A DNA stretch of 64,000 nucleotides from Chrysemys picta bellii (Eukaryota), in the NCBI RefSeq assembly GCF_011386835.1, contig NC_088794.1, positions 1,116,001-1,180,000 on the forward strand, written 5' to 3'. Position numbers and translations under genes: made by a program. A model generated the notes under the pieces. That model saw only the letters and a program-made list of their open reading frames with translations. It was not told where the DNA came from and did no database searches. Shown here one piece after another: positions 7,742-47,200 of the stretch (position 1 is the stretch's first letter; each line of letters begins with the position of its first letter).

Positions 7742-8591
7742 CCTCCGGCTCCTTTGGCCACGCCGAGCTCAGCCCCAGGGCCACAGCCTGCGTCCGTCCT
7801 GGTGATCTGCACGGGAGAGACACATCCCCTCTCAGCCAGGGCTCAGACAGACAGACAGACAGACTGAGCCCCCCTCGGCAAGAGCCCCCCCTGCCAGGCG
7901 GGACAGGATCCTGGGGGCATATCCAGCAGGAGCGGTAGGGATGGGGCATCAGGGAGCCCAGCGCTGGATCCTGCCTCCGGCGTCATACTGACAGACTGGA
8001 CGGGGCTCAGGGAAGGGCCACAGGAAGGATACGAGGGCCGGAAAACCCGCCTGGCAGCCCGAGGCCGAAGGAGCTTGGACGTGGAGCGGGAGGGAGGGTG
8101 AGAAATGACTCGTTCCGGCTCTAGAAGTAGCTCCACAGGAAGAGATTTCCGAGAGCCGGGGGCTCCTCCCCCAGCCGACAGTGGCAGAGTGAGGGCCCAG
8201 GCTGGGGGCTGGCGCCAGACGCGTTCACACGGGGAAAAAGGCGCCAATGTTCAGTGGGGCGGGGACTAGCCAGGGGCCGGCTTGCTGGGGCTGGGCGGAG
8301 GCTCCCTCCCTCGCCAGCTCAGGAAGCGCCGCTCGAGCTCAGCCGGGAGCGATGGGGCCGGGGCAGGAATCGCCGGGGAGAGTCTCCGGCCTGGGTCACA
8401 CAGGAGCTCAGACGGGGTGGGCACCACGGGCCCTGCTGGCCCTGGCGTCTCTGAAACTCCAGTCTCTGCCCAGGACAAACCCCCAGGACAAACCCCCAGC
8501 TCTCCCCTCCCCGTGCCCCGACCCAGCTCCCCCCACCCCAGGGACCCCTGGCAGCCCCCGGCTCTGACCCCCGCCCCCTGCCCGGACTCAC

Positions 8592-26910: not shown

Positions 26911-27699
26911 GCGGGGGGACCCCGCTCTGCCCGGACACCTGGGTTCCTTCTTAACCCCACCACCCTGGCCTCCCACCCTGCACTCAACAGCCAACCCCAC
27001 CCCAGGCCAGGGCTGGATTTGGGGGGTCCCCCATTCCCCAGATACATGGGGGAGGGGCACCAAATTCCCATCCCCCCCAGTGTTCGCTCCTGGCACCCCA
27101 TGAGCCACGGGACCCCACTCGCTAGCACCTCCTACTGCTGCACCCAGGACACCAGGTCTCCCGGGTCAGCGTCGCTGCTCCTGGCACCATCCTGCTCAAT
27201 AAACCCGTCTCCTGCTGTCCCATGCCGGCGGGGGTCATTTCAGGGGGGCCCGGGGCCTGTGCCAAGGAGCAGGCATCCCCTGGGGGATGGGCGAGGCCAG
27301 GGTGCAGGGGAGGAGTGGCCAGAACCCAGGCGTCCTGCTCCCTGCAGCGCAGCACCCCCAGCACCCCACTGATCCCAGCACTGACTGCCAGGGAAGGGCC
27401 CCCCACAGCCCCCCACGCCGGCTGCCTGCTGTGCTGTCCTTTCCTAGTCCTGCTCTGCAATCCCCCAGGGCCACCTTCCCGCAGGCCTTGTGCCCCAGCG
27501 GGGGAGATCAGCCCCCCAGGAACCCAGGCCCCCCTCTGCTCTAAGGGCTGTGCCCCCAAACCTGTTACTGGCTCCCCAGAGGGGCCTGCAGCCCCCAACT
27601 TTCTGCTCAGCCCCACCCGGCTGGGCCCCATCAGCCATTAAACCAGCTCCTGTCAGCGCCCACCCGCTCTTCCCCCAGCTGCTCCCAGCTCTGGTCATT

Positions 27700-31351: not shown

Positions 31352-33434
31352 ATGCAGAACGCCCTGGGGCCCGCCTGCATCTTCCTGCGCAAGGGCATCG
31401 CCGAGAAGCATGGGGTGAGACGCCTGGTTCTGCGAGGGGAGCGGGGGCTGGGAGCCCGGATGCCTGGGTTCTCTCCCGGCTCTGGGAGAGGAGTGGGGGC
31501 TGGTGGGTTAGAGCAGGGGGGGCTGGGAGCCAGGACTCCTGGGTTCTCTCCCGGCTCTGGGAGGGGAGGGGGCTGGTGGGTTAGAGCCGGGGCGGGGCTG
31601 GGAGTCCGGACACCTGGGTTCTCTCCCCAGCAGGACCGCACTGGGTCCCTGAGTGTGTCTCTTTATTGCAGCACCGGGAGCTGGGAGCCGATGAAATCGA
31701 AGGTAAGAAGCCCACAGGAGGGGAGTGGGATCTAGTGATTAAAGCAGGGAAGGAGGGGTGGGGCTGGGAGCCCGGACGCCTGGGTTCTCGTTGCAGCCCA
31801 AAGGAGAGAGGGGTCTAGTAGGTTGGTGCAGGAGCCCCCAGTACTAGCCCCACCCCCAGGAGGGCTGTGGGGGAACACAGGTGCTGCAGGTAGGGAGGGG
31901 GCCCAGCAGTCCTGGGTTCCCCCCGGGGGGGAGCTCAGCCCGGACGGCAGGGGGGGCCCAGCCCGGTGGGGGGGGATCAGCAAGGTGGGGGGGGGCCCAG
32001 CCCGGCAGGGGGGCTCAGCCCAGCAGGGGGGGCCCAGCCCAGCGGGGTGGGGGGCTCAGCATGACTGCAGGGGGCCCAGCCCGGTGTGGAGGGCTCAGCC
32101 CGGCGGTTCCCGGCAGAGCTGCGCGAGGCCTTCGCGGAGTTCGACAAGGACAAGGACGGGCTGATCGGCTGCAAGGACCTGGGCAACCTGATGCGCACCA
32201 TGGGCTACATGCCCACCGAGATGGAGCTCATCGAGCTCTCGCAGCAGATCAACATGAACCGTGAGCCGGGGCTTCACGGGGTGACCGGGGGGGCTCCTAG
32301 CGGGGGGGTGCTTGGGAAGGGATGGGGCTCCTGGCAGGGCGGTGCTCGGGAAGGGACGGGGCTCCTGGCAGGGCGGTGCCCGGGAGGGGACGGGGCTCCT
32401 AGCAGGGGGGTGCCTGGGAGGGGACAGGGCTCCTAGCAGGGGGGTGCCCGGGAGGGGACGGGGCTCCTGGCAGGGGGGTGCCTGGGAGGGGGCGGGGCTC
32501 CTGGCAGGGCGGTGCCCGGGAAGGGGCGGGGCTCCTGGCAGGGGGGTGCCCAGGGGAGTGGGGCTCCTAGCAGGGGACCCCCGGCTGACCCCCACCTCCC
32601 ATTGCAGTGGGGGGCCGGGTGGATTTCGAAGACTTCGTGGAGCTGATGACACCCAAGCTGCTGGCCGAGACGGCCGGTATGATCGGGCTGCAGGAGATGA
32701 GGGACGCCTTCAAGGAGGTGAGGGAGAGAGAACCCAGGCGTCCGGGCTCCTAGCCCCCCCCGGCCCTAACCCCCCTCCCCTCCCAGAGCCAGGAGAGAAC
32801 CCAGGAGTCCGTGCTCCCAGCCCCTGGCTCTAACCCCCCTCCCAGGGCTGGGAGAGAACCCAAGTGTCTGGGCTCTCAGCCCCCTCTCAGAGCCAGGGAG
32901 CGAACCCAGGAGTCCTGACGGCTGCCCCCTCCCCCCCCCCCCCGCAGTTTGACACCAACGGGGATGGGGAGATCACGCTGGACGAGCTGCAGCTGGCCAT
33001 GCAGCGCCTCATGGGCGAGCGGCTCACCCCCCGCGAAATCAGCGACGTGGTCAAGGAGGCCGACATCAACGGGGACGGGACCGTCGACTTCGAGGGTACG
33101 TGGGACGCCCTGGGGGATTGTGGGTAACGTGCCGCTCGGCCAGAGCCCACACGGGTCACGCCCCATGGCCCTGGCAAGGGATTGTGGGTAACGCGCCGCT
33201 CGGCCAGAGCCCACACGGGTCACGCCCCACGGCCCTGGCAAGGGATTGTGGGCCGGTGTTGGTGGACCATGGCCTGCCAGCTCTAAGAGGGGATTGTGGG
33301 TAAGGCACACTTGGTGTGAGTGGCGCAGGGCTTCTGGGGGCTGGGATCCCCTGGTGGGGTGGCTCCGTGGGGCTGGGATCGGTACTAATGGGGGTCTTTC
33401 CCCTGTAGAGTTTGTGAAGATGATGTCACGCTGA
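31352..33434 (+). CDS. CABP5: Calcium-binding protein 5 (EF-hand, CaBP family), 173 aa
   Basis: Exons 31352-31414, 31672-31702, 32117-32260, 32608-32717, 32948-33095, 33409-33434 (522 nt). Peptides [59 protein letters not shown] match CABP5 as recalled. AATAAA at 33784. Confidence 0.93.
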
Positions 33435-33989
33435 GGGGGCCGAGCCCCGCCAAGATCAGAGACTGACCTTGGAGGGGGGGGTCGAGCCCAACTGGCTGTC
33501 AAGACACCACCACGAGTGACTCCCAAATTGCTGCGTCCTGCCCCCCCACCTCCCTGCCAACTACCCCCAGAGTCCCCAATGCCTTCCCCAGCCCCCTCCC
33601 ACAGCCTTCCCCCACACCATGTCCCCCCAGACCTCCACCGCCCCCAGCACTCACTCACCTCCCCCTCCACTCCCCACGGTCCTTCCTTTCCTGTCCCCCC
33701 CGCCCCATGGTTCTCTGGATCCCACCGTCCCCCCAGGTCTCCTCCCCGGACCCCTCCACCACAGACACGCAGCCCTTGTGTGCAATAAAAGCCGTGTGCT
33801 GAACCCAGGCGTCCGAGGGAGGCTTTCTTGGCCAGGGGATCACGGTTACAACGCGGCAGCGGGGGCTGGGGGGAGGCCGAGCCGAGCGCAGGGTGAAGGG
33901 CTTAGAGTCAATAATCACAGCCCGCGGGGACAACATATGGATGGGAATAACCGGCTTAGCATGGGTGGCTGGGGGGGCAAGGCAGGGCA

Positions 33990-34935
33990 CGGCTGGGCTG
34001 GCAGGGGCTGCAGGTCGGGAGTGAGGGGCAGCGGCAGAGCTGGGGGGGCAGGGGGCTGCGGGTCGGGAGTGAGGGGCAGCGGCAGGGCTGGGGGGGCAGG
34101 GCTGGGCTAGCAGGGGCTGCGGGTCGGGAGTGAGGGGCACCGGCAGAGCTGGGGGGGCAGGGCTGGGCTAGCAGGAGCTGCGGGTCGGGAGTGAGGGGCA
34201 TCGACAGAGCTGGGGGGGGGCAGGGCTGGGCTAGCAGGGGCTGCGGGTCGGGAGTGAGGGGCATCGACAGAGCTGGGGGGGGCAGGGCTGGGCTAGCAGG
34301 GGCTGCGGGTCGGGAGTGAGGGGCATCGACAGAGCTGGGGGGGGGCAGGGCTGGGCTAGCAGGGGCTGCGGGTCGGGAGTGAGGGGCATCGACAGAGCTG
34401 GGGGGGGCAGGTCCGGGCTGGCAGGGGCTGCAGGTCGGGAGTGAGGGGCATCGACAGAGCTGCGGGGGGGCAGGGCTGGGCTGGCAGGGGCTGCGGGTCG
34501 GGAGTGAGGGGCACCGGCAGAGCTGGGGGGGGGGGCAGGGCTGGGCTGGCAGGGGCTGCGGGTTGGGAATGAGGGGCACCGGCAGAGCTGCGGGGGGGCA
34601 GGGCTGGGCTAGCAGGGGCTGCGGATCGGGAGTGAGGGGCACCGGCAGAGCTGCGGGGGGGCAGGGCTGGGCTAGCAGGGGCTGCGGGTCGGGAGTGAGG
34701 GGCACCGGCAGGGCTGGGGGGGGGCAGGGCTGGGCTAGCAGGGGCTGCGGGTCGGGAGTGAGGGGCATCAACAGAGCTGGGGGGGCAGGGCTGGGCTGGC
34801 AGGGGCTGCGGGTCGGGAGTGAGGGGCACCAGCAGAGCTGGGGGGGGGCAGGGCTGGGCTGGCAGGGGCTGCGGGTCGGGAGTGAGGGGCATCGACACAG
34901 CTGGGGGGGGCAGGGCTGGGCTGGCAGGGGCTGCG
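33990..34935. repeat. ~60-bp minisatellite x~15
   Basis: Same unit as 18380-18730. Confidence 0.9.
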
Positions 34936-34989
34936 GGTCGGGAGTGAGGGGCACCAGCATGGCAGCCCGTCCCCCTGTCCTCCCCAGGC

Positions 34990-35120
34990 ACAGCTGTCTG
35001 TCATTAGGGGCTGAGATTAAATTGCGGCTTCAGCTCCAATCCTGGGAGTTTTTAATCCGGAAATATCGTTAAATGAAACGAGCAGCCGAGCCGGATAATC
35101 CCCCCGGCGCCCTGGGATTG
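34990..35120. promoter_or_regulatory. Putative retinal enhancer: cluster of K50 homeodomain sites
   Basis: AGATTA 35014-35019, TAATCC 35053-35058, TAATCC 35096-35101, GGATTG ~35115, E-box CAGCTG 34991; locally AT-richer unique sequence between two VNTRs. Confidence 0.5.
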
Positions 35121-35419
35121 CTCCAGCACCTGGGTGTCCTGGGGCTGAGATCGGGGGTGGGGGAGTCCGTGGGTCTGTGGCACTGCAGGGAGATGGACGT
35201 ACCCGCAGCCCCCCGCCAGCCCAGCCCTGCGGTGCCCCTCACTTCCGACCCGCAGCCCCTGCCAGCCCTGGGCCCCTCCCCAGCTCTCTACCACTCCCTC
35301 CCCCTTCAGTTCCTGCTCCCTGGCTCTACACCCCAGCGCTCGGCTGTGTACAGACACATCCTGCTCTCATGGGAGGGGCTGAGACCCTGCGCCCCAAACA
35401 ACGGGACCCCCGATCTCGC

Positions 35420-36180
35420 TCACCGCGGGTCTGTGCCGTGCCCGGCCCGATGGGCCCCGATCTCGCTCCCCGCGGGTCTGCGCCACGCCCGGCCCGATGG
35501 GCCCCGATCTCGCTCCCCGCGGGTCTGCGCCACGCCCGGCCCGATGGGCCCCGATCTCGCTCCCCGCGGGTCTGCGCCACGCCCGGCCCGATGGGCCCCG
35601 ATCTCGCTCCCCGCGGGTCTGCGCCACGCCCGGCCCGATGGGCCCCGATCTCGCTCCCTGCAGGTCTGTGCCGTGCCCGGCCCGATGGGCCCCGATCTCG
35701 CTCCCTGCGGGTCTGTGCCGTGCCTGGCCCGATGGGCCCCGATCTCGCTCCCCACGGGTCTGCGCCACGCCCGGCCCGATGGGCCCCGATCTCGCTCCCC
35801 ACGGGTCTGCGCCACGCCCGGCCCGATGGGCCCCGATCTCGCTCCCTGCGGGTCTGTGCCGTGCCTGGCCCGATGGGCCCCGATCTCGCTCCCCACGGGT
35901 CTGCGCCACGCCCGGCCCGATGGGCCCCGATCTCGCTCCCTGCGGGTCTGTGCCGTGCCTGGCCCGATGGGCCCCGATCTCGCCCCCCACGGGTCTGCGC
36001 CACGCCCGGCCCGATGGGCCCCGATCTCGCTCCCCACGGGTCTGCGCCACGCCCGGCCCGATGGGCCCCGATCTCGCTCCCTGCGGGTCTGCGCCACGCC
36101 CGGCCTGATGGGCCCCGATCTTGCTCCCTGCGGGTCTGCGCCGCGCCCGGCCCGACAGGCCCCGATCTCGCTCCATCCCC
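35420..36180. repeat. 47-bp CpG-dense VNTR x~16
   Basis: Unit gcccggcccgatgggccccgatctcgctccccgcgggtctgcgccac. Confidence 0.92.
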
Positions 36181-36899
36181 ACTGCTGTGAGCAGTGGGAC
36201 CCACTGCCCTGCGGCGGAGTTAAGGCCCTTGGGCTGAGGGGTCAGTTCACACCAGGGCCCCGGCCGGGCTGCTGGCTCACATACAGGCCCCGATCCCTGG
36301 AGCTCTCACACTCGCTGGGCCTGTTCCCCGATGCAGACCGCGGAGGCTGGGACCCTGCCAGAGCAGGTGGCACGTAGGGGAGTGGGGGCCCCGTACACCG
36401 TGTGTGCCCCACTGAGAGTCCTGGAGAGAAGTGGGGGGAAGGGCTGGGAAGGAACCCCAGTGCAGGGGGAAGGGGAGTCATAGTCTGTGACTCAGGACTC
36501 CTGGGTTCTCTCATGCATCTGAGAGGGATGTGGGGTTTAGTGGTTTAGAGCAGGGGGGCTGGGAGCCAGGACTCCTGGGTTCTCTTGCGGCTCTGGGAGG
36601 GGCGTGGGGGCTGGTGGGGTAGAGCCAGGACTCCTGGGTCCCAAGCTGCTCTCTGTGATGTTGTCAGAGGGTGGGCTCCACCCGTTCGTTAGCGCTGATT
36701 GCACCAGGGTGTGGCCAGGCAGTGCCGGGGGGAGGGGATATATCAGACCCCTGTGGAGGCCCAGTAGGGAGCTAGTGAGCAGGGGGAGGGGGTTTCCCTG
36801 GGGTAGGGCTTTGGGGTGCAGTGTGTCTTGCACAGCTGGGTGCCTGGGGCCTCCCCAGGGGTGAGCTCCCTGCCCCCAGGCTGACCTGCCCCCTCAGCC

Positions 36900-39800
36900 A
36901 TGGGCGAGTCCCCCGTGCGAGTGGAGGTGCTGACCCAGGTAAAGGGAAGGGGGCTCTGGGGTGTCATGGTGGAGGGCTTTGGGAGGTGACTTGTGTTGGG
37001 GAAGGTGGGGGAGTGGTGATCCCTGAGGGAAGAGTGTCTGGAGAAGGGGGGACCCTGGGCTGGGGGACCCCTGGAGATGCACAGCTGTGTTGGGGGCAGA
37101 AAGGCTCTGGACTGTGGGGGGGATGACCTAAGTGCTGGTGTCCCTCTAACCCCTCTCTCCCCCCAGCTGCAGCACCACGGCATCCCCTCAGAGCAGATCA
37201 CCTACCCTCGCGTCACCCTCTCCGCGCCCTGGCGGCTCTGTGTCCGGCATGGCCTCCCCGAGGACCCTGCTGGGGCCCGAGTCACCCTGCTCGACCTGCG
37301 TGAGCCCCACGGCCCAGCCACCCACAGCTGGCCCCTGCACCAGGCCCAGGGTGCGCTGGCCCACCCCAGCCAGCCCCTGCTGGCCCTACGAGGTATGGGG
37401 GTCTCATGGGTACGAGGAGGGGGGCAGCAGGGGCCAGACTCCCAGGCCAGGGAACAGGGTGGGAGGTGTTCTGGGCTGACTGGTAATAGCATCAACTCTC
37501 CATAGAGGCCCCGGCCTGACCCTGAGACCCATGGCCACACTGCACCCCAATGGGGATCCTCACCTCCCCCATGGCTCAGTTGACCCGTCTCTGCCCCCAA
37601 TGGGCCATGTGGCTGGGCCCCGGGGTGCTGACTCGTCTCTGCCCGCAGCGGGCTGTGTGGCCATGGGACCAGGCTGGGCCCCGGGGCGCTGACTCGTCTC
37701 TGCCCACAGCGGGCTGTGTGGCCGGGCCGGGCCCCGGGGCGCTGACTCGTCTCTGCCCGCAGCGGGCTGTGTGGCCATGGGACCAGGCCGGGCCCCGGGG
37801 CGCTGACTCGTCTCTGCCCGCAGCGGGCTGTGTGGCCGGGCCGGGCCCCGGGGCGCTGACTCGTCTCTGCCCGCAGCGGGCTGTGTGGCCATGGGACCAG
37901 GCCGGGCCCCGGGGCGCTGACTCGTCTCTGCCCGCAGCGGGCTGTGTGGCCGGGCCGGGCCCCGGGGCGCTGACTCGTCTCTGCCCGCAGCGGGCTGTGT
38001 GGCCATGGGACCGGGCCGGGCCCCAGGGCGCTGACTCGTCTCTGCCCGCAGCGGGCTGTGTGGCCATGGGACCAGGCCGGGCCCCGGGGCGCTGACTCGT
38101 CTCTGCCCGCAGCGGGCTGTGTGGCCATGGGACCAGGCCGGGCCCCGGGGCGCTGACTCGTCTCTGCCCGCAGCGGGCTGTGTGGCCATGGGACCAGGCC
38201 GGGCCCCGGGGCGCTGACTCGTCTCTGCCCGCAGCGGGCTGTGTGGCACAGGTGTTCGATGTGGCGCAGCGCTGCCTACGCTGGCAGTGGACCTTTGCCC
38301 ACCCCCTGGAGTTCTGGGCCTGGCTGGAGCCCAACACGCTGGCGCTGGTGACGGAGGAGGAGGTGTTCCACTGGGCCCTCAGCCGTGAGCATGCCACAGG
38401 CCACCCCCGTCGGGGAGCTGACAGGCGCCCTGGGAGGAGGGTGGGCTGGTCAATGGGGGGCTAGCCTGGGGGTCCTGTGGAGCAGGACTGGTTGGCATGG
38501 GGGGGGTCCGGCAGGGGGTTCTGTGGGGAGCAGGGCTGGTCAGCGGGGTGGGGTTTGGGCAGGGGATGCTGTGGGGAGGGGGGTTGGTTGGCAGGGGGCA
38601 GGCAGGGGCTGTCGGGGGGGTGGCCGGTTGGCGTGGGGTGGAGTCAGGCAGGGGGTGTTGTGTGGGGGGGGGACTGGTCGGCGTGGGGCGGAGTCGGGCA
38701 AGGAGTGCCGTGGGAGGTGGCCGGTCAGCGTGGGGCAGGGGGTGCCGTGAGGGGCGGTCGCTAAGCTCCTAACTCTAGTCTGTACCCCCCGGCCGGCAGG
38801 ACCAAAGCCGCGGCGTCAGTTCTGGCGCCATGAGCAGCTGTGGCGCACGGAGGTGGTGGGATACCAGCAGGACGCCAGCGGGCTCTGGCTGGCGCTGTCC
38901 ACGCTGGGCCTGGACCAGGTAAGGACACCCCTCCCCCCCCCCCCCCCCCCCCCCCGCCAGCTGCCCCCAGAATCCCAGGGGCCCCTCTGCCCGGCTGACC
39001 CCGTGTCTCTCCCCAGAAGGGCCAGGTGGTGGGGCTGACCCAGCTGTACTGGCGGGGGGGGCGGCTCTCCCAGGTCATCGAGGCCCAGGCGGTGGCGCTG
39101 CCCCGGCACAGCTTCTCCAGGAACCCCCACCCCTCCTCCGCCTTGCTGGCCGCCGTCCGGCACGGGGCAGAGCGCTACGGGCAGGTGTGTGACTGGGGGG
39201 GGCTGGCTCCCGGCGGGTTGTGGGTAGTGCCTGGGGTGGGCAGGAGTGGAGGGGGGCTGGCTCCCGGAGGGTTGTGGGTAGTGCCTGGGGTGGGCGGGAG
39301 AGGAAAGGCAGGGCAGGTGGGGGCTGGCTCCCAGAGGGTTGTGGGTAGTGCCTGGGGTGGGCGGGAGGGGAAAGGCAGGACAGGTGGGGGCTGGCTCCTG
39401 GCGGGTTGTGGGTAGTGCCTGGGGTGGGCGGGAGAGGAAAGGCAGGGCAGGTGGGGGCTGGCTCCCAGAGGGTTGTGGGTAGTGCCTGGGGTGGGCGTGG
39501 AGGTAGCAGAGGGCAGTGCCAGGGTGGGGGGCAGGCAGGTGGCAGATGGGGGCTGGGGAAGGGCTGTACCCGTCTGACCACCCCCCCCCCTCTCTCTCAG
39601 TTCCACGTGGTGGAGCTGGGCCCGCACCAGCCAGGCAACGCTGCCCTGCTCAGTGCCCGCGCCAGCCTGGCCTTCAAGGGTGCCCGGCCCGGGGACTTCC
39701 CCAGCGCCGTGCAGGTGAGCCGGGAGCAGGGTGTGTGGTGGGTCCCTGGGGGAGATGAGGGGGGTTGCTGGGGGTGCCTGCCAGCAGCGTGGGGCTATCT

Positions 39801-40338
39801 GGGCGTGCGTGACCCAGCCCCTCTCCTCCCCTCCCCACAGTTCGCCCCACGGCTGGGCCTGGCCCTGGTGCTCACCAAGCACGCCCTGCTCTTCCTGGCC
39901 GACGTGGAGACCGCCCAGCCCCTGCACCGCGTCCAGCTGGCCTGGGACATCGTCTTCACCACGGTGCCCGACCCCCCCCGCCACGGCCTGGTGGGGGTGT
40001 GCCGCAGCGGCAAGGTGAGCCGGGGGGCAGCCTGCCGACGGGGAGGGATGCCCTGCTGGGAGGCTGGGCTAGGGGCACGGGTGGGGAGGGGAGAGCCCTG
40101 GGCAGCTCCAGCCCTGCACCCCTGACAGCCCCTCTCTCCTTCCCTGCCCCCTCTGCAGGTGCTGTCGGTCTCGCTGGGCCTGGACCCCCTCCTGCAGCTG
40201 CTGTCGCACCGCCCTGCCAGTCTCTATCTCACCCAGCGCCTGCTGCAGCTGGTGGGGCGGGTGCCGCGCCCCGGGGCCAGCCCAGACCCCAAGCCGGGGG
40301 GCTGGGGAGCAGGCAGGGCTGGGGGGCTCTGTCACTAG
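36900..40338 (+). CDS. Stand-alone clathrin heavy-chain N-terminal domain (beta-propeller plus linker) protein, 389 aa
   Basis: Exons 36900-36938, 37167-37392, 38235-38384, 38800-38918, 39017-39184, 39601-39714, 39841-40014, 40159-40338 (1170 nt, all GT-AG, open). Colinear with clathrin HC residues ~1-360, e.g. FWAWLEPNTLALVTEEEVFHW vs [30 protein letters not shown] vs RVVGAMQLY, GDFPSAVQ vs NDFPVAMQ, GVCRSGKVLSV vs GVNRKGQVLSV. AATAAA at 40555. Confidence 0.85.
37620..38234 (+). repeat. 61/53-bp VNTR made of 11 copies of the 3' splice site of exon 3
   Basis: ctgactcgtctctgccc(g/a)cag|cgggctgtgtgg; AGs at 37648, 37709, 37762, 37823, 37876, 37937, 37990, 38051, 38112, 38173, 38234. Confidence 0.9.
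39200..39500. repeat. G-rich intronic tandem repeat (~60 bp)
   Basis: ggctggctccc..gggttgtgggtagtgcctggggtgggc x5. Confidence 0.8.
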
Positions 40339-40599
40339 GGTAACTTGTACCGGGGGGGTGGGAGGTCTCTGGCGCTGAGGTGAAAGCAGGGACTGGCCTG
40401 AGTCTCCTGCAGCCCCAGGGGCTGGGAAGGGGAGGAGTCGGCCTGAGGTTCCCATCAGTGGGGGGGGGGGGTAGGAGACCCTCTCTGCAGCTCTCCTGTC
40501 ACTGACTGGGGGGGGCACCCCAGCTGCAATGTCCTGTGTCCTCCTGGGTTTTACAATAAATGAAAGAAGCTGGAGCCCTGGGCTGGGGCTGGCATCCGG

Positions 40600-41080
40600 C
40601 ATCCAGCTGTGTGGGTCTCTGCCTGGGAGCCCTGGGGCAGGGATGTGTCTCTGGCTGGGAGCCGGGAGCAGGGGGCTCTGGTTAGATGCCAGTGGGGAGG
40701 GGATGTGTCTCTGCCTGGGAGCCCGGAGCAGAGGGCTGTGGTTAGATGATGGGGGGGGGGGGGGGGGGGGGGCTGAGGGAGGATGTCTCTGGCTGGGAGC
40801 CGGGAGCTCTGGTTAGATGCCGGGGGGGGGGGGGGGGAATGTGTCTCTGGCTCGGAGTCAGGAGCAGGGGGCTCTGGTTAGATGCCGGGGGGCGGGGGAG
40901 GGGGGGGGGGGAGATGTATCTCTGGCTGGGAGCAGGGGGCTCTGGTTAGATGCCGGGGGGGGGGGGAATGTGTCTCTGGCTCGGAGTCAGGAGCAGGGGG
41001 CTCTGGTTAGATGCCGGGGGGCGGGGGGGGGGGGAGATGTATCTCTGGCTGGGAGCAGGGGGCTCTGGTTAGATGCCGGG
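40600..41080. repeat. G-rich VNTR between the convergent 3' ends of two genes
   Basis: ctctggttagatgccggggg..tgtctctggctgggagcagg variants. Confidence 0.8.
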
Positions 41081-41234
41081 GAGGGTGGGGGCGTGTTGCC
41101 GTCTCACTGTGCACAGCCCCCAGCTCTGGCCAGGCCATTTATTTGTCATCGAGGGGGGAGCAGATCTCGGCCCGTTCACAGCGGTTGGGGTGGGGGTCTT
41201 AAAGGGAGGCCCAAGCCCCCCTCTCTCCCACACC

Positions 41235-44200
41235 CTAGCTGTCCTGGCGCAGGGGCACGGTGCCACTCTCGGCTGCTGCGTGGGACCGAGCTGTCCTCTT
41301 CTGTCGTGCTGCCCTAGAGGGGGGAGCTGGGGTTAGTGGAGGGTGGCAGGGCTGGGGGAAGGCCCCGGGTGCTGGGTGAGGGGGGCAGTGTCCCTACCTG
41401 CTCTGCTCCCTGCCCTCCGGCCGCCTGGTCCCGGCGTCTCCCGTGCCCTTCAGCTCGTCTATGATCTCCTGCAGCAGGTCCAGCCTGGGGAGTGGGGGCA
41501 GGTTAGCAGGGAGGTGGGGGTGGCCCAGCCCCCCCCCCCATGGTGCACCCCATGGCTGCTGCAGGGAGCGATAGCTGGATCTGTCAAGCCACCAGCCTCC
41601 CTCCTCCCATTACACCTGCTCTCCAGCCCCAGCCCCCCTCGCCTCACCGCTCCCCCCACTCCCAGGCCTGCTGTGATAACGGGGACATGAGCCAGGGTCA
41701 TGTGCTGCCCAAGGGGGTGCTGCTCCCCATAACACGTGCTGGAGGGTGGTTCTCAGCCCTGCTCCCTCCCTCCCCAACGTGGGGGACTGCAGCAGAGGCT
41801 GCTGGGTAAAATGCTGAGGGGAGCGCTGGCCTCTGCTTCCCTCCCCACTGCAGGGCTGCCCGGCCACTCACGACTGCAGGGTGCCAAAGGGGCTGTCCAG
41901 GGTCAGCTCACAGGCCAGGTCGGAGCGTCCCAGGCCCTGCAGACAGACCGGCGGGGGGGGGGGGGAGAGTCGGTGATGGTGGCAGATCTGGGGGGGCAGC
42001 TGGGGGGGGGGGTTCTCCTTTCTCCGTTACCTGTTGCTGCTCCTGCATTCGTACCCAGGCAGAGAAATCGATGAGGGTCTGCAGGGGACGACCCCCAGGC
42101 CCTGTGCTGGCCCTGCTATGCTTGCCTGGGGAGGAGGGAGTGGGTGAGTGTGGGACACTGCCCTGGCCAGGGTGGGAGGAGGGGCCCCAGGTCAGGGGGT
42201 GCTGGCCAGGCCTTGGCAGGGGGAGGGATAACAGCCTGGGGGCAGTCACACCCCAGGAGTGGGGGGCCAGCATTGCTGGGCAGGCCCTGTGCTGCTCCTT
42301 GGTGCTGTCAGCCAGGCACCTAGGGGATCCCAAAGTTGGCACCCAGAGCAGCACGCCTGGGGCTCTGCAAGGGGGGCTGCCTACTACCCCCCCATCCACA
42401 GAGCTCGGTGGAGCCCAGTGTGAAGGGGCTGGGGGGGAACCCACCTGCTCTGTTCTAGTGGGGGGAGGCTGGGAGGTATGACTCACCTGCTGGGGCCATG
42501 GGTGGCTGGCCGGACCCTTGCAGGGCCCCCAGGCTGCAGCATGCCCGGGTGGCCCCTGTTTGGCCAGCCCCACGCCTGCCGCAGCGTCGCTGGGCCGGGA
42601 GCGCCCCCTGGAGGCTGACGAAGTCCTGCAGGGCCTGGATGCCAGAGGCAAAGCGGCGCTCCAGGGTTTCCAGCGAGGCTTGGGCCTGATCCAGCAGGCA
42701 GGCTGAGGCTTGGAGGCTGCTCACGCAGGGCAGGGCTTGGGGCCGGGCCGGCTCCTACGGGTGACACAGCCGGGGTTAGATGCTGGGGATAGGGGGGTAA
42801 AGTCGGCCGTCCCGACACTCAATTAATAGATTTTACCCACCCCTTAACGCTATCCCCTCAACGTTAACAGCGTTTCTCCTGTTGCAAGAGCACCCCAGCT
42901 CACAACCTCCTTACAACCTGTTGTAACTAACGCACACGGCAAGCCTCGCTACGCTTGCGTTCACCAGTGCCCACGGCAGCTCCAGCTCTACGCCCCACAC
43001 GGGTAGGGCTATTGGCTGCGGTACCAGGCAGGTCATGGGTAAGCCTTGCAAGCGGCTTCGCCTCTCTCTCCCAGTCGGCCCTGCAACATGCACCTTCCTT
43101 GGAACGGGCTGTAATTCCACAGCAGGTTCTGCATCCAGCACAGGAGACTTCCTGGGGGCAGCACCTCCCCTTCCTTGGGCATCGCTGCCCGCTCTGCAGC
43201 CATATCTGCCAGTGGGAGCTGTAATGGGGCCTCACAGCGTAGCCCGATTCTAGGCTCTGGGGGGGTTCATAAAAGTAGTTAAACCCCAATCATTCATCGC
43301 CAGAGATGAATGATGCTCTCCCCTTCGTGTCTCTGTTCTGTCACAGCCGGCCCATCCTAGTTCTGTGGGACAGCCAGATTGCTACTAGCAGACGTAGTGG
43401 CCGGCTCACTTCCAGGGAACCGTACCAACTGCCCAATTGCCAACCAGCGATTCCTGGCAAGAGTTCTGATCTCTCTCCTTCCTTCTTCTGTCCGGAGCTG
43501 ATCTATGGGAATCCCAGGTCGTTTCTGAACAACCTGATAGGGTTCTGATTTCCAACGGTCTCCTGGCTTGTTCTTCCATTTTACTCCTGAGTTCCTTATC
43601 AAACCGCAGTCACCTGGGAGTAGTTCTTGCTCTCGTATGCACTGGTCACGTCAGATCTTATTCTGAGTTGCGCTCTTCACTGCCGCAGCCATAGCCAGTC
43701 AATAGGCGTTTCTCCTGTTGTTGTGTTGTTTTCTTTACACACTGAAGACGTCAAGGCCACCTCCCTCTGGAGTCACTCCAAAACAAATGTCCACGGGTAG
43801 TCTCGCTTCCCTCACAAACATTAGACAACGAGGGGAGAATCCAGTGGCATCATTCCTGGCACAATTATAAGTGTGTGCTAGTTGTGAAACATGTTGGCTC
43901 CATTTGTGCTTTTGTATCGGGCTGAGAGTCCCAAGCATGTTCAAAAGCGCCCCAGTGAAACGTTCTGGCTGTGGGGCCCCTTGTGGGTGATATGGTGAGG
44001 TCCGGGATTTCTTTGCCCCAATTATTTGTAGTAGTTCTTTGATAAGTGTAGTTGCAAAGTCACACCCCGGATCAGAGTGAATTCTGGAAGGCCAGCAGTA
44101 GTGCACAATACTATCTTGGCTACAGCGGGAGTGCGCTGATGTTTCACGGGGAATGCTTGTGCTTACTGAGTGAAATGATCTGTTACCACTAATACGCTAG

Positions 44201-47200
44201 TGTTCCCTTCGTTGTCAGATTCTAGGAACACACAAGATCCATGGGTTGCTTGCTTTGGATGTTAACTAACTGGGCACATGGTTTGGGTAACGTCTTCCAA
44301 GCTCAACAGCTGGCACAATTCTTACCAATATTCCTCTATAACCCTCGCTAATCTGGGCCAATAGAACCATCTTCTTACCCTCCCAAGTGTCTGGTCTACC
44401 CCAAAGTGCCCTCCTTCATCATGCAAGGACTTCAGCACCAGGTCCCTGAATTCTCCTGGCAACATCAGCTGATGATAATGGTGATGAAGTGAGTCCCTCG
44501 ATAGAACAGGCCTCTTTTCGATGTTAACTGGTTCCACTCTCTCAAGATCAGTTTTGCAGCTGGATGGGCATTCTGTATGGTATTCCCAGGTCTCCCCCGG
44601 CTTTCAGCAGTCAGGGTCACTTTCAGGCTGGGAGCTCTTGAGTGCGAATATCTTCCCCTTGCAATCTGGGAAACAAAGTAAGATCCAGTTGGGTGGCATC
44701 TGTATACCCCTTGGGTATAGCATTGGGAGGGGCTCCCAGCAGTTCCATGATGCCATTGTGCATCTGATTCAGGCTAAGAGGCTAGCTTATGCAAACCCTC
44801 ACTCCAGGAGCTGGGATGTCAGTCCATTCCTGGCCTGGCACCCTCTCTGTCCAGCCGGCAGGATAATGCATCAGGCCCTGGGCGATACTACATTTGGAAG
44901 TCAGAGGCGGCCAATGCTGCTAACCACCTATGCCCTGTGGCATCCAAACAGGCCGACTTCAAGACCTAAATTAAGGAATTGTTTTCAGTACAGATTGTGA
45001 ATTTTGCTCTATAAAGATAATCATGAAATTTCTTGGCCACAGCCCACTTTGGTGCTAGTTTGTGAGCTGGATAGATATTAGACTCCTACTGGTATAAGCA
45101 ACTGGTCCCCGTCCACAGTATTGAGTTTAAAATGGGACCGTGCCCACACTTGGAAGGGTCCCCACATGGGCTCCACCCTGAAGATCCCACCCTAGCCTCT
45201 TCCCCCCCCCCCCCGAGGCCCCACCTGCCAACCCCTCCTCTTTGCCCCCCGCCCCCATGTGAGCTGTGGCACGGCCTCAGGGAGGAGCATGGGTGGGCCA
45301 GGGAGCAGGGCCATGGTCCAGGCACCAGGACCCACAAAAGGTTAATCCGGCCCTGCCCATCCATCTGTATATTCTTGATAGACGATTCCTCCAAATCCTT
45401 CCATATTAGCATCAATGTGTAGAAGATACGGTTAGTTAGTATCAGCAAAAGCTAACACAGGAGCATGCACCAGTGCATCTATTAACATCAAAACAGCATT
45501 CTCACGACAGAGTCCACTGGCTTCTTTGACTGGTAGTTGTCAGGTTCTGCATCCAGATACCCTTTTCCTATGGGGAATATGCCTTGGTGAGTTCATCTAA
45601 GGGATGACAAAGGGCAGAAAATCCCGCTACAAATCACCTATAATAATTGCAGAAACCCCCCGACCAAAAAACAACAAACAAAAACCCTGTAATTCTTTCA
45701 AGGTTTAGGGGCTTGATCATGTCCACAGGGTTTTTGGTTTGTCCGGATCTGCAGCAACTCCATCTCGAGATGCAGTGTATGCCCTACGGACTTTGTTTTC
45801 CTGACAGAACTGGCATTTGTCTAGAGCTAGCTTCAATCCATGTCACTGCAGACAGTCATACATTTTTTAATAAGCATTCTTCGTGCTCTTCCAAAGTGCA
45901 ACCGAATACTATCAAGTCATCCAGATACACCAGGACTTGCAGAAGGTTCATGTCACCCCCAACCATCCACTCAATTAATCTCTGGAATGGCCCCACATAT
46001 TCCCTGAAGCCGAGTGGACAGATGAAGGCTCTTTTGCGTATCTGATGGTTTTCCTTTTTGGATCTGAGAAGCAGTTACTAACCGCTTCCTATTAGGCAGT
46101 GACTCTAAGGCATCATCCACTCATTGGTCAGGTACATCTATTCAAAATGTGATAATCTATGCAAATGCATAATCCTCATTCTTTTTTCTGGCCACAACAA
46201 CTGGGGAGGCATAAAGACTTGTAGGATTCCTTCAGTCTTCATCTCCTGCACAGGTTTCCGAACATCTTCGATATCTGCAGGTGCTAGTCCCTTCGATCTT
46301 TCATAGAAAGGCCTATCATTCTGCGGAATGTGATGTGCCAAGGAGTTGACCAACCCACTCACAAGTGGAGAACACTTGGGCTCTCTGCACGAGTTTCCAT
46401 TTCAATCTCTCTTTCCACACCAGAGGAATTGGGGAGTTCCTAAAGTTCAACTTCTCTGGGTCAAATATGGGTATAATCTTCCTGCGGGGGGCAGATGGGC
46501 CACCGCTGCAGCCCAGTATACCTGCACTAACACAGTTCCCTGAAGGATAGTGATTGGGTGCTCAGTTTCATTAGCCACCAGTAGCTTTACTGACGCGTTC
46601 TGTACGAGACGAGGTTTTGGCTACACCTCTCTTCAACATCAGTCCTCCCCGCAGCACATCTGTATCTGAGGCTTCAACCAAGATCAACTGATTGATTGGT
46701 GGCTGTGACGAAGTGGGAATGTTCTTAATGTGTTCTTTGAATGCTGAGCGGGGAGTGTTGGCCTGGGAAGGTTGCAGGGGAGTTTTGCTGGGACGGTCTG
46801 CATTGGGGGTGGGAGACTGGCCTTGAGGGAGGATACCTGAGCATGTAACATGAGAACCCAGGAAGGGAGGGGAGCCCAGACGGGGCTTGGGCTTCCCAAC
46901 AGGGCTCTGGTGTCCCTGGGGCCCCTAGATGGACCAAACTCAGGGGGTCCTGTTGTCTGTACCTGCCAGACCTGTCTTGGACTGTGTTCCTGTCGTCTAA
47001 ATAAACCTTCTGTGTTACTGGCTGGCTGAGAGTCATGGTGAATCGCAGGAAGCCGGGGGTGCAGGGCCTTGTCTCCCCCACACTCCATGACAGTGGCCTT
47101 CTGATCCCCTTGAGCCATTCCATCCTAGCAGGAATGGTAACTGGAGTCCCATATCCTAGTTTCACCGGTCCTCCGAGTCCACCTGGTCTCGCTCTCCTTC

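Follow-up and report, generated by a model that had tools for sequence, protein, structure and literature searches.

A clathrin terminal-domain gene without legs in the turtle Chrysemys picta bellii and the family to which it belongs

The gene and its coding sequence

The stretch of DNA analysed here (the window) comprises 64,000 nucleotides (nt) of the turtle Chrysemys picta bellii (contig NC_088794.1 of assembly GCF_011386835.1, positions 1,116,001 to 1,180,000 of the forward strand), and the gene considered below, which encodes a protein related to the terminal domain of the clathrin heavy chain (CLTC) and lacks its legs, occupies window positions 36900-40560. The original prediction, made from the letters alone, described an intact eight-exon open reading frame (ORF) of 389 amino acids (aa) restricted to the terminal domain and followed by a stop and an AATAAA signal, and this was borne out: eight GT..AG exons on the + strand between 36900 and 40338 splice to 1170 nt, that is 389 codons and a TAG at 40336-40338, with AATAAA at 40555-40560. 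The spliced product is letter-for-letter identical to P0034, which is NCBI XP_042703553.2 (“clathrin heavy chain 2-like isoform X1”, Chrysemys picta bellii), an automatic NCBI model whose locus (GCA_011386835.2, CM062321.1) lies wholly inside the window. All seven introns are GT..AG, with phases 0,1,1,0,0,0,0, and the gene is composed as follows.

Exon 1, 36900-36938, + strand, 39 nt: ATG and residues 1-13, the counterpart of the CLTC N-terminal strand; donor GTAAAG
Exon 2, 37167-37392, + strand, 226 nt: blade 1 and first part of blade 2; contains His41 and Trp68, both invariant in the family
Tandem array in intron 2, 37611-38247, + strand: 61-nt unit, 10.8 copies
Exon 3, 38235-38384, + strand, 150 nt: blades 2-3, matching CLTC residues 87-132 (E 5e-6)
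Exon 4, 38800-38918, + strand, 119 nt
Exon 5, 39017-39184, + strand, 168 nt: invariant Gln197, equivalent to CLTC Q192 of the arrestin box
Exon 6, 39601-39714, + strand, 114 nt: size, phase, and boundaries those of the canonical heavy-chain exon
Exon 7, 39841-40014, + strand, 174 nt: size, phase, and boundaries of the canonical heavy-chain exon; matches CLTC 273-322 (E 9e-3)
Exon 8, coding part, 40159-40338, + strand, 180 nt: last propeller strand, two linker helices, disordered tail, and TAG
3' untranslated region (UTR), 40339-40560, + strand: ends with AATAAA; transcript end predicted

The ORF and all splice sites are intact both in Chrysemys and in the pleurodire turtle Emydura. Over codons 1-365 the two genes differ at 39 of 799 nonsynonymous sites and 67 of 293 synonymous sites, giving a nonsynonymous rate (dN) of 0.050, a synonymous rate (dS) of 0.273, and a dN/dS of 0.185. 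It had been claimed from the outset that the frame has stayed open despite heavy divergence, and the ratio obtained for the propeller indicates that this part of the turtle protein is kept open by selection. The tail encoded by exon 8 (residues about 365-389) is disordered and unconserved, and its dN/dS between the two turtles is about 1. The gene lies in very GC-rich DNA, with a GC content at third codon positions (GC3) of 0.91, owing to which the protein is rich in Ala, Gly, Pro, and Arg and drew a composition warning in the phylogenetic analysis.

The turtle gene has no room for legs, as had been noted earlier, because the convergent neighbour, a kinase gene, has the end of its coding sequence (CDS) at window position 41176, about 0.8 kb downstream of the stop. 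The protein ends at residue 389, short of the full linker and of the approximately seven CHCR leg repeats of a heavy chain, and no coding sequence for the trimerisation and light-chain-binding hub is present, given the stop at 40336-40338 and the convergent CDS end. In the millipede, the gene that follows the corresponding family member, at a distance of 1.4 kb, is an opposite-strand transporter. A 1800-nt Logan contig furthermore contains the whole 376-aa ORF of a millipede-type member, uninterrupted by introns; in-frame stops precede this ORF, and a 3' UTR of 191 nt comes after it. Since the millipede gene has eight introns, this contig represents a spliced mRNA. That the turtle sequence might be a fragment of a longer heavy-chain gene was considered and ruled out, as the neighbouring genes leave no space for legs.

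Two further NCBI isoforms of the turtle gene are modelled. Isoform X2 (P0038) skips exon 6, as shown by alignment, and so lacks 38 aa, and isoform X3 (P0026) has 339 aa, 50 aa fewer than X1, a length that fits skipping of exon 3. Upstream of exon 3, each 61-nt unit of the intron 2 array carries a polypyrimidine tract, a CAG acceptor, and the initial bases of exon 3, creating about ten decoy acceptors ahead of the real one. Emydura has a homologous array (L002, 10700-10893; 59-nt unit, 3.2 copies), so that the array is old in turtles.

Predicted fold, relatives, and age

Residues 5-342 of the turtle protein align to CLTC 6-335 (E 4e-48 for the whole protein), and exons 3 and 7 each match the solved CLTC terminal domain at colinear positions when searched singly. 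Colinearity with the heavy chain thus stood as first described, except that it does not run “through the linker” but takes in only its first two helices. The AlphaFold2 model, for which an alignment of 20 family sequences was used (mean predicted local distance difference test score, pLDDT, 89; predicted template modelling score, pTM, 0.87), has 28 strands arranged in seven blades, as in the canonical N-terminal propeller, and two C-terminal helices at 338-346 and 352-362, roughly CLTC 331-354; residues 370-389 are disordered in it. The overlay on the CLTC terminal domain proposed with the original prediction was obtained with Foldseek, whose top matches are solved clathrin terminal domains (template modelling score, TM, by target 0.92-0.93; root-mean-square deviation 2.0-2.8 Å; identity 27-28%), with other propellers far behind. 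The only comparable matches among the Swiss-Prot structure models are full-length heavy chains of animals, plants, fungi, and Dictyostelium, and no short human or mouse protein with a comparable match was found there. Pfam gave only a sub-threshold Clathrin_propel match for the whole turtle protein and none for its single exons; Clathrin (PF00637), Clathrin-link (PF09268), and Clathrin_H_link (PF13838) had no match in it, and domains of these types are present in the canonical heavy-chain fragments retrieved by the family search. NCBIfam gave no match for the turtle protein. Together, these analyses predict a product consisting of a seven-blade propeller and the first two linker helices, followed by a disordered tail.

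The nearest known structure is therefore the N-terminal domain of CLTC/CHC17 (residues 1-363; PDB 1C9I, 1UTC, 2XZG, 5M5R), which has the same propeller and first linker helices and shares exon boundaries with the turtle gene where these were compared; the turtle protein has almost the length of the 1-363 construct used for crystallography. Unlike CLTC, the family to which the turtle protein belongs has no distal or proximal leg, CHCR repeats, light-chain site, or trimerisation domain, and it derives from a separate gene of bilaterian age. Another short protein carrying a piece of the clathrin heavy chain is CLHC1, which is defined by the linker core motif and not by the propeller. By this description it is set apart from the turtle protein, which has no Clathrin_H_link or Clathrin-link match in Pfam, and no CLHC1 entry appeared among the Swiss-Prot structural matches of the turtle model. 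CLTCL1/CHC22, with which the turtle protein has a structural identity of 30% and after which NCBI calls the gene “clathrin heavy chain 2-like”, is a full-length, triskelion-forming paralog of CLTC that arose by a jawed-vertebrate duplication and was lost in some vertebrate lineages (PMC6548504). The turtle family, in contrast, is not nested with vertebrate heavy chains and occurs also in lamprey, echinoderms, and arthropods.

Relatives were sought by an exhaustive HMMER search with exon 2, two word-indexed searches, and a profile search with the family alignment; the last of these stopped at 8000 candidates and missed even some of the query members, so that little weight attaches to absences from it. 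Members of 369-391 aa were found in vertebrates (turtles, squamates, caecilians, lungfish, and lamprey), in Ambulacraria (a crinoid, sea urchins, a starfish, a brittle star, and two hemichordates), and in arthropods (spiders, a tick, a horseshoe crab, a millipede, and a centipede). Every member stops 8-25 residues past the second helix, and the turtle protein, with its propeller, two helices, and short tail, agrees in both length and end point. No member from mammals, birds, crocodilians, frogs, teleosts, or insects was among the matches listed, an absence that is provisional and accords with the earlier statement that no mammalian equivalent was known. Thirteen alignment columns are invariant or nearly so within the family yet differ from the canonical state (including T29R, L30V, E42H, R64W, and K78P); in turtle numbering these are R28, V29, H41, T53, W68, P83, A170, L174, A201, L240, P242, H243, and R327, and the turtle protein carries all of them. 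The replacements of R64 by Trp and E42 by His, found in every member, set the family apart from CLTC. The members bear automatic names only, such as “clathrin heavy chain 1-like/2-like”, and no description of a stand-alone terminal-domain paralog was found in the literature, which is no proof that none exists; this family of leg-less terminal-domain proteins is apparently unstudied.

The relationships of the family were reconstructed in a maximum-likelihood tree (LG+C20; 29 rows) comprising 25 terminal-domain-only proteins and four canonical sequences, one full and three partial. The latter are a vertebrate heavy chain (P0063; 720 bits to CLTC over residues 1-371), a protist-type fragment (P0064), an invertebrate-type fragment (P0065), and a tinamou fragment (P0066). 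All 25 terminal-domain-only proteins form one clade (100/99) apart from the canonical animal heavy chains (95/95), and the sub-clades follow taxonomy (vertebrates 100/100, Ambulacraria 94/94, arthropods 99/98). Within the vertebrates the order of branching is lamprey, lungfish, caecilians, and then turtles with squamates, and the Chrysemys protein is placed beside other turtles and squamates. Forcing the vertebrate members together with the vertebrate heavy chains was rejected by the approximately unbiased (AU) test (delta lnL 92, p 1.5e-45). An origin as a CLTC/CLTCL1 ohnolog of the two rounds of vertebrate genome duplication (2R) was discarded on this test and on the presence of members in lamprey, echinoderms, and arthropods.

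The gene structures agree with this history. The seven intron positions and the phases 0,1,1,0,0,0,0 are common to turtle, lamprey, sea urchin, and millipede, including the phase-0 boundary of the first exon, and the millipede gene has the turtle-type boundaries plus one extra intron. The exon sizes (nt) of three members are:

Turtle: 39/226/150/119/168/114/174/180
Lamprey: 54/220/150/122/168/114/174/129
Sea urchin: 51/220/156/125/174/114/174/111

In the canonical gene of the tinamou, 114- and 174-nt phase-0 exons start and end at the same residues as turtle exons 6 and 7, in line with the sizes first given for CLTC, and the next canonical exon, of 198 nt, is the homolog of the last, stop-bearing exon of the family. 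Because the 114- and 174-nt boundaries match those of the heavy-chain gene, the family represents a duplicate of the 5' part of a heavy-chain gene with introns rather than a retrocopy, and from the distribution of its members the duplication is at least as old as the protostome-deuterostome ancestor. The earlier idea of an old gene duplicate thus held as regards the introns at canonical positions, and the age has to be placed far beyond a vertebrate event of the CLTC/CLTCL1 type. A processed retrocopy or pseudogene of CLTC was likewise dismissed, since the gene has seven introns, of which two or more lie at canonical positions, and a dN/dS of 0.185.

Predicted peptide-binding grooves and possible function

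The clathrin terminal domain is the hub at which dozens of adaptors recruit the coat, and for decades work on it has relied on an artificial fragment. For each of its peptide sites, the CLTC positions at which mutations are disruptive (PMC5182127) were mapped on the family alignment with P0063 as numbering reference, so that the comparison is one of conservation. At the clathrin box, 21 of 25 members have Q and 4 have E at the Q89 position, F91 is aromatic in 24/25, the I80 and L82 positions are hydrophobic throughout, and R, K, or H occupies the K96 position in 18/25, with a basic residue in all arthropod members and in amniotes, caecilians, and lungfish. At the arrestin box, every member has W164 and Q192, 24/25 have I194, and the L183 position is hydrophobic. 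The W box has V or I at the I154 position, L in all members at the I170 position, E, Q, A, or D at the Q152 position, and an aromatic residue at F27 in 22/25, and in the Royle box pocket the I7, I282, and V327 positions are hydrophobic. From groove floors and backbone-binding glutamines that are kept and charged rims that are changed family-wide, we infer a peptide-in-groove binder of altered specificity.

Taken together, the turtle locus probably holds a functional gene for a stand-alone terminal domain, the ortholog of an ancient family, whose product would act as a soluble motif-binding modulator or adaptor and not as a coat component. The 5' part of an intron-containing heavy-chain gene would have been duplicated before the protostome/deuterostome split, and the duplicate then passed on vertically and lost in many lineages. 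Its product would be a monomeric propeller with two linker helices; as it has no leg, light-chain-binding, or trimerisation region, it should be unable to join or build a lattice. Short linear motifs in unstructured regions of other proteins could dock in the inter-blade grooves, with a specificity that has probably been remodelled, the R64 position being Trp in all members and several charged rim residues being altered. Since such a protein would be monovalent and non-polymerising, it most likely works in soluble form on trafficking proteins that bear such motifs, modulating them or serving them as an adaptor, either as a competitor of clathrin recruitment, as the dedicated partner of a family-specific ligand, or as both. 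The original prediction had offered a monomeric adaptor decoy or regulator of clathrin-mediated traffic, or a repurposed propeller; its observations are confirmed and its interpretation is partly supported, the evolutionary part being both supported and extended.

Several points weigh against a functional motif-binding modulator. At the clathrin box, the R64 position is Trp in 25/25 members and K98 is not retained; at the arrestin box, the R188 equivalent is lost; at the Royle box, the F9 position is V, I, or L in all members and E11 is not retained outside arthropods. With these charged contact residues changed, canonical clathrin-box binding may have been lost, and the groove residues that are retained, being in part buried and hydrophobic, may have been conserved for the sake of the fold and not for a ligand. 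Peptide binding, and any role in traffic, is for all members deduced from such patterns. At the level of the gene, the exon skips modelled in isoforms X2 and X3 are in frame and would remove propeller strands and break the propeller. Chrysemys read contigs from four runs over the locus are of genomic type, crossing introns and showing no splice joints, and a search for RNA-Seq runs holding turtle exon 7 listed none, so that the automatic model and the signature of selection are what speak for transcription and for the 3' end in Chrysemys. In the tree, canonical sampling is sparse (one full and three partial sequences), and the family and the protist outgroup have long branches.

An alternative close to the preferred account is a pure decoy, in which the free propeller would bind L-phi-x-phi-[DE], PWxxW, and [LI][LI]GxL motifs just as clathrin does and compete with triskelia for AP2, amphiphysin, epsin, and arrestin, thereby damping clathrin-mediated endocytosis. 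The fold is identical to that of the terminal domain, the equivalents of Q89, F91, Q192, W164, I154, and I170 are retained, and that of K96 is basic in the groups named above, all of which would suit a decoy; but the Trp at the R64 position and the loss of K98, R188, E11, and F9 do not, a weak (approximately micromolar) monovalent domain would in general have to be very abundant to rival trivalent, lattice-forming clathrin, and the thirteen residues that are invariant in the family and specific to it hint that the protein has a dedicated role. A pure decoy is accordingly regarded as unlikely, and simple competition for canonical clathrin-box motifs is not the sole way to understand the protein and perhaps not the best one.

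It is also improbable, if anything somewhat more so, that the propeller has been repurposed outside coat biology as a scaffold for a family-specific ligand bound by a remodelled blade 1-2 face and, in some lineages, anchored by a C-terminal tail resembling a PDZ ligand. Six of the 13 family-specific residues (R28, V29, H41, T53, W68, P83) do fall in blades 1-2, and proteins of caecilians, lungfish, lamprey, and hemichordates end in -VTSV, -ITAV, or -DTTV; amniotes, echinoderms, and arthropods nevertheless have no such tail motif, the tail shows neutral evolution in turtles, and the scaffold is without a known partner. That the turtle gene is a decaying remnant, a transcribed relic open by chance or a piece of a mis-assembled full-length gene, is highly improbable and was already disfavoured, for although the turtle sequences are strongly diverged from the rest of the family, the base composition is extreme (GC3 0.91), exon-skipping isoforms are modelled, exon 3 is translated in a different frame in some models from sea turtles, and no RNA run or splice joint was found for the turtle locus, a dN/dS of 0.185 across the cryptodire-pleurodire split with an intact eight-exon ORF in both turtles, an architecture identical from lamprey to millipede, and neighbouring genes that leave no space for legs all speak against it.

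Beyond the preferred account of a soluble modulator or adaptor, it may tentatively be suggested, as a possibility short of an expectation, that bilaterians ancestrally had a second, leg-less clathrin product with a ligand specificity of its own (Trp at R64), which regulated or bypassed clathrin-adaptor interactions and has been overlooked since it was lost in the usual models. The family appears to have been lost in human and mouse and probably also in fly and worm, and would be tractable in sea urchins, starfish, spiders, and lizards. A natural protein under selection that approximates the terminal-domain fragment and is apparently absent from standard models would add a new component to the networks of motif-based trafficking, and the family would constitute a natural experiment on how a free terminal domain acts in the cell. 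The inventory of heavy-chain genes is also affected: a 2019 survey (PMC6548504), which makes no reference to a paralog of this kind, counted one gene in lamprey, and lamprey has in addition a second, truncated one.

Neighbouring genes, repeats, and annotation of relatives

Two genes lie upstream of the clathrin-like gene in the window.

CABP-type EF-hand gene, 31352-33434, + strand: 175 aa, directly upstream of the clathrin-like gene
ADP-ribosylglycohydrolase gene, ending near 26954: upstream of the EF-hand gene

The same two genes stand upstream in Emydura in the order seen in Chrysemys, and in lamprey a GIT-type ArfGAP is located upstream and an ankyrin-kinase downstream. Comparison of the turtle and lamprey flanks by tblastx returned low-complexity noise only and no synteny, and when the window was scanned for motifs of kinase-domain exons, none came to light. 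GC-rich minisatellites, which generate spurious long ORFs in several frames, flank the clathrin-like gene at 33950-36380 and 40615-41096; their units measure 47 nt at 36000-36174 and about 60-129 nt between the two convergent genes. On the - strand at 43735-44537, ORFs resembling a retroelement integrase are probably what remains of a Gypsy-type element that lies within a kinase-gene intron.

Several relatives are affected by their annotation. The Mauremys model (P0018) fuses the EF-hand gene to the clathrin-like gene, the Platysternon member (P0029) is wrongly named “elongation factor Tu”, and the Ixodes member (P0062) is erroneously fused to an LSm protein. Among the sea-turtle models (P0001, P0002, P0027, P0054), the frame of exon 3 differs in Chelonia and Dermochelys or the protein is named “uncharacterized protein”; the frame differences could stem from the use of other acceptors, from faulty assembly, or from genuine damage to the gene in some species. 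The Lepidochelys model is 91% identical across all 389 Chrysemys residues. At the other end of the protein, the C-termini read -KVTSV in caecilians and lungfish, -KITAV in lamprey, and -DTTV in hemichordates (P0006, P0012, P0013, P0008, P0060, P0061), and these endings resemble class I PDZ ligands.

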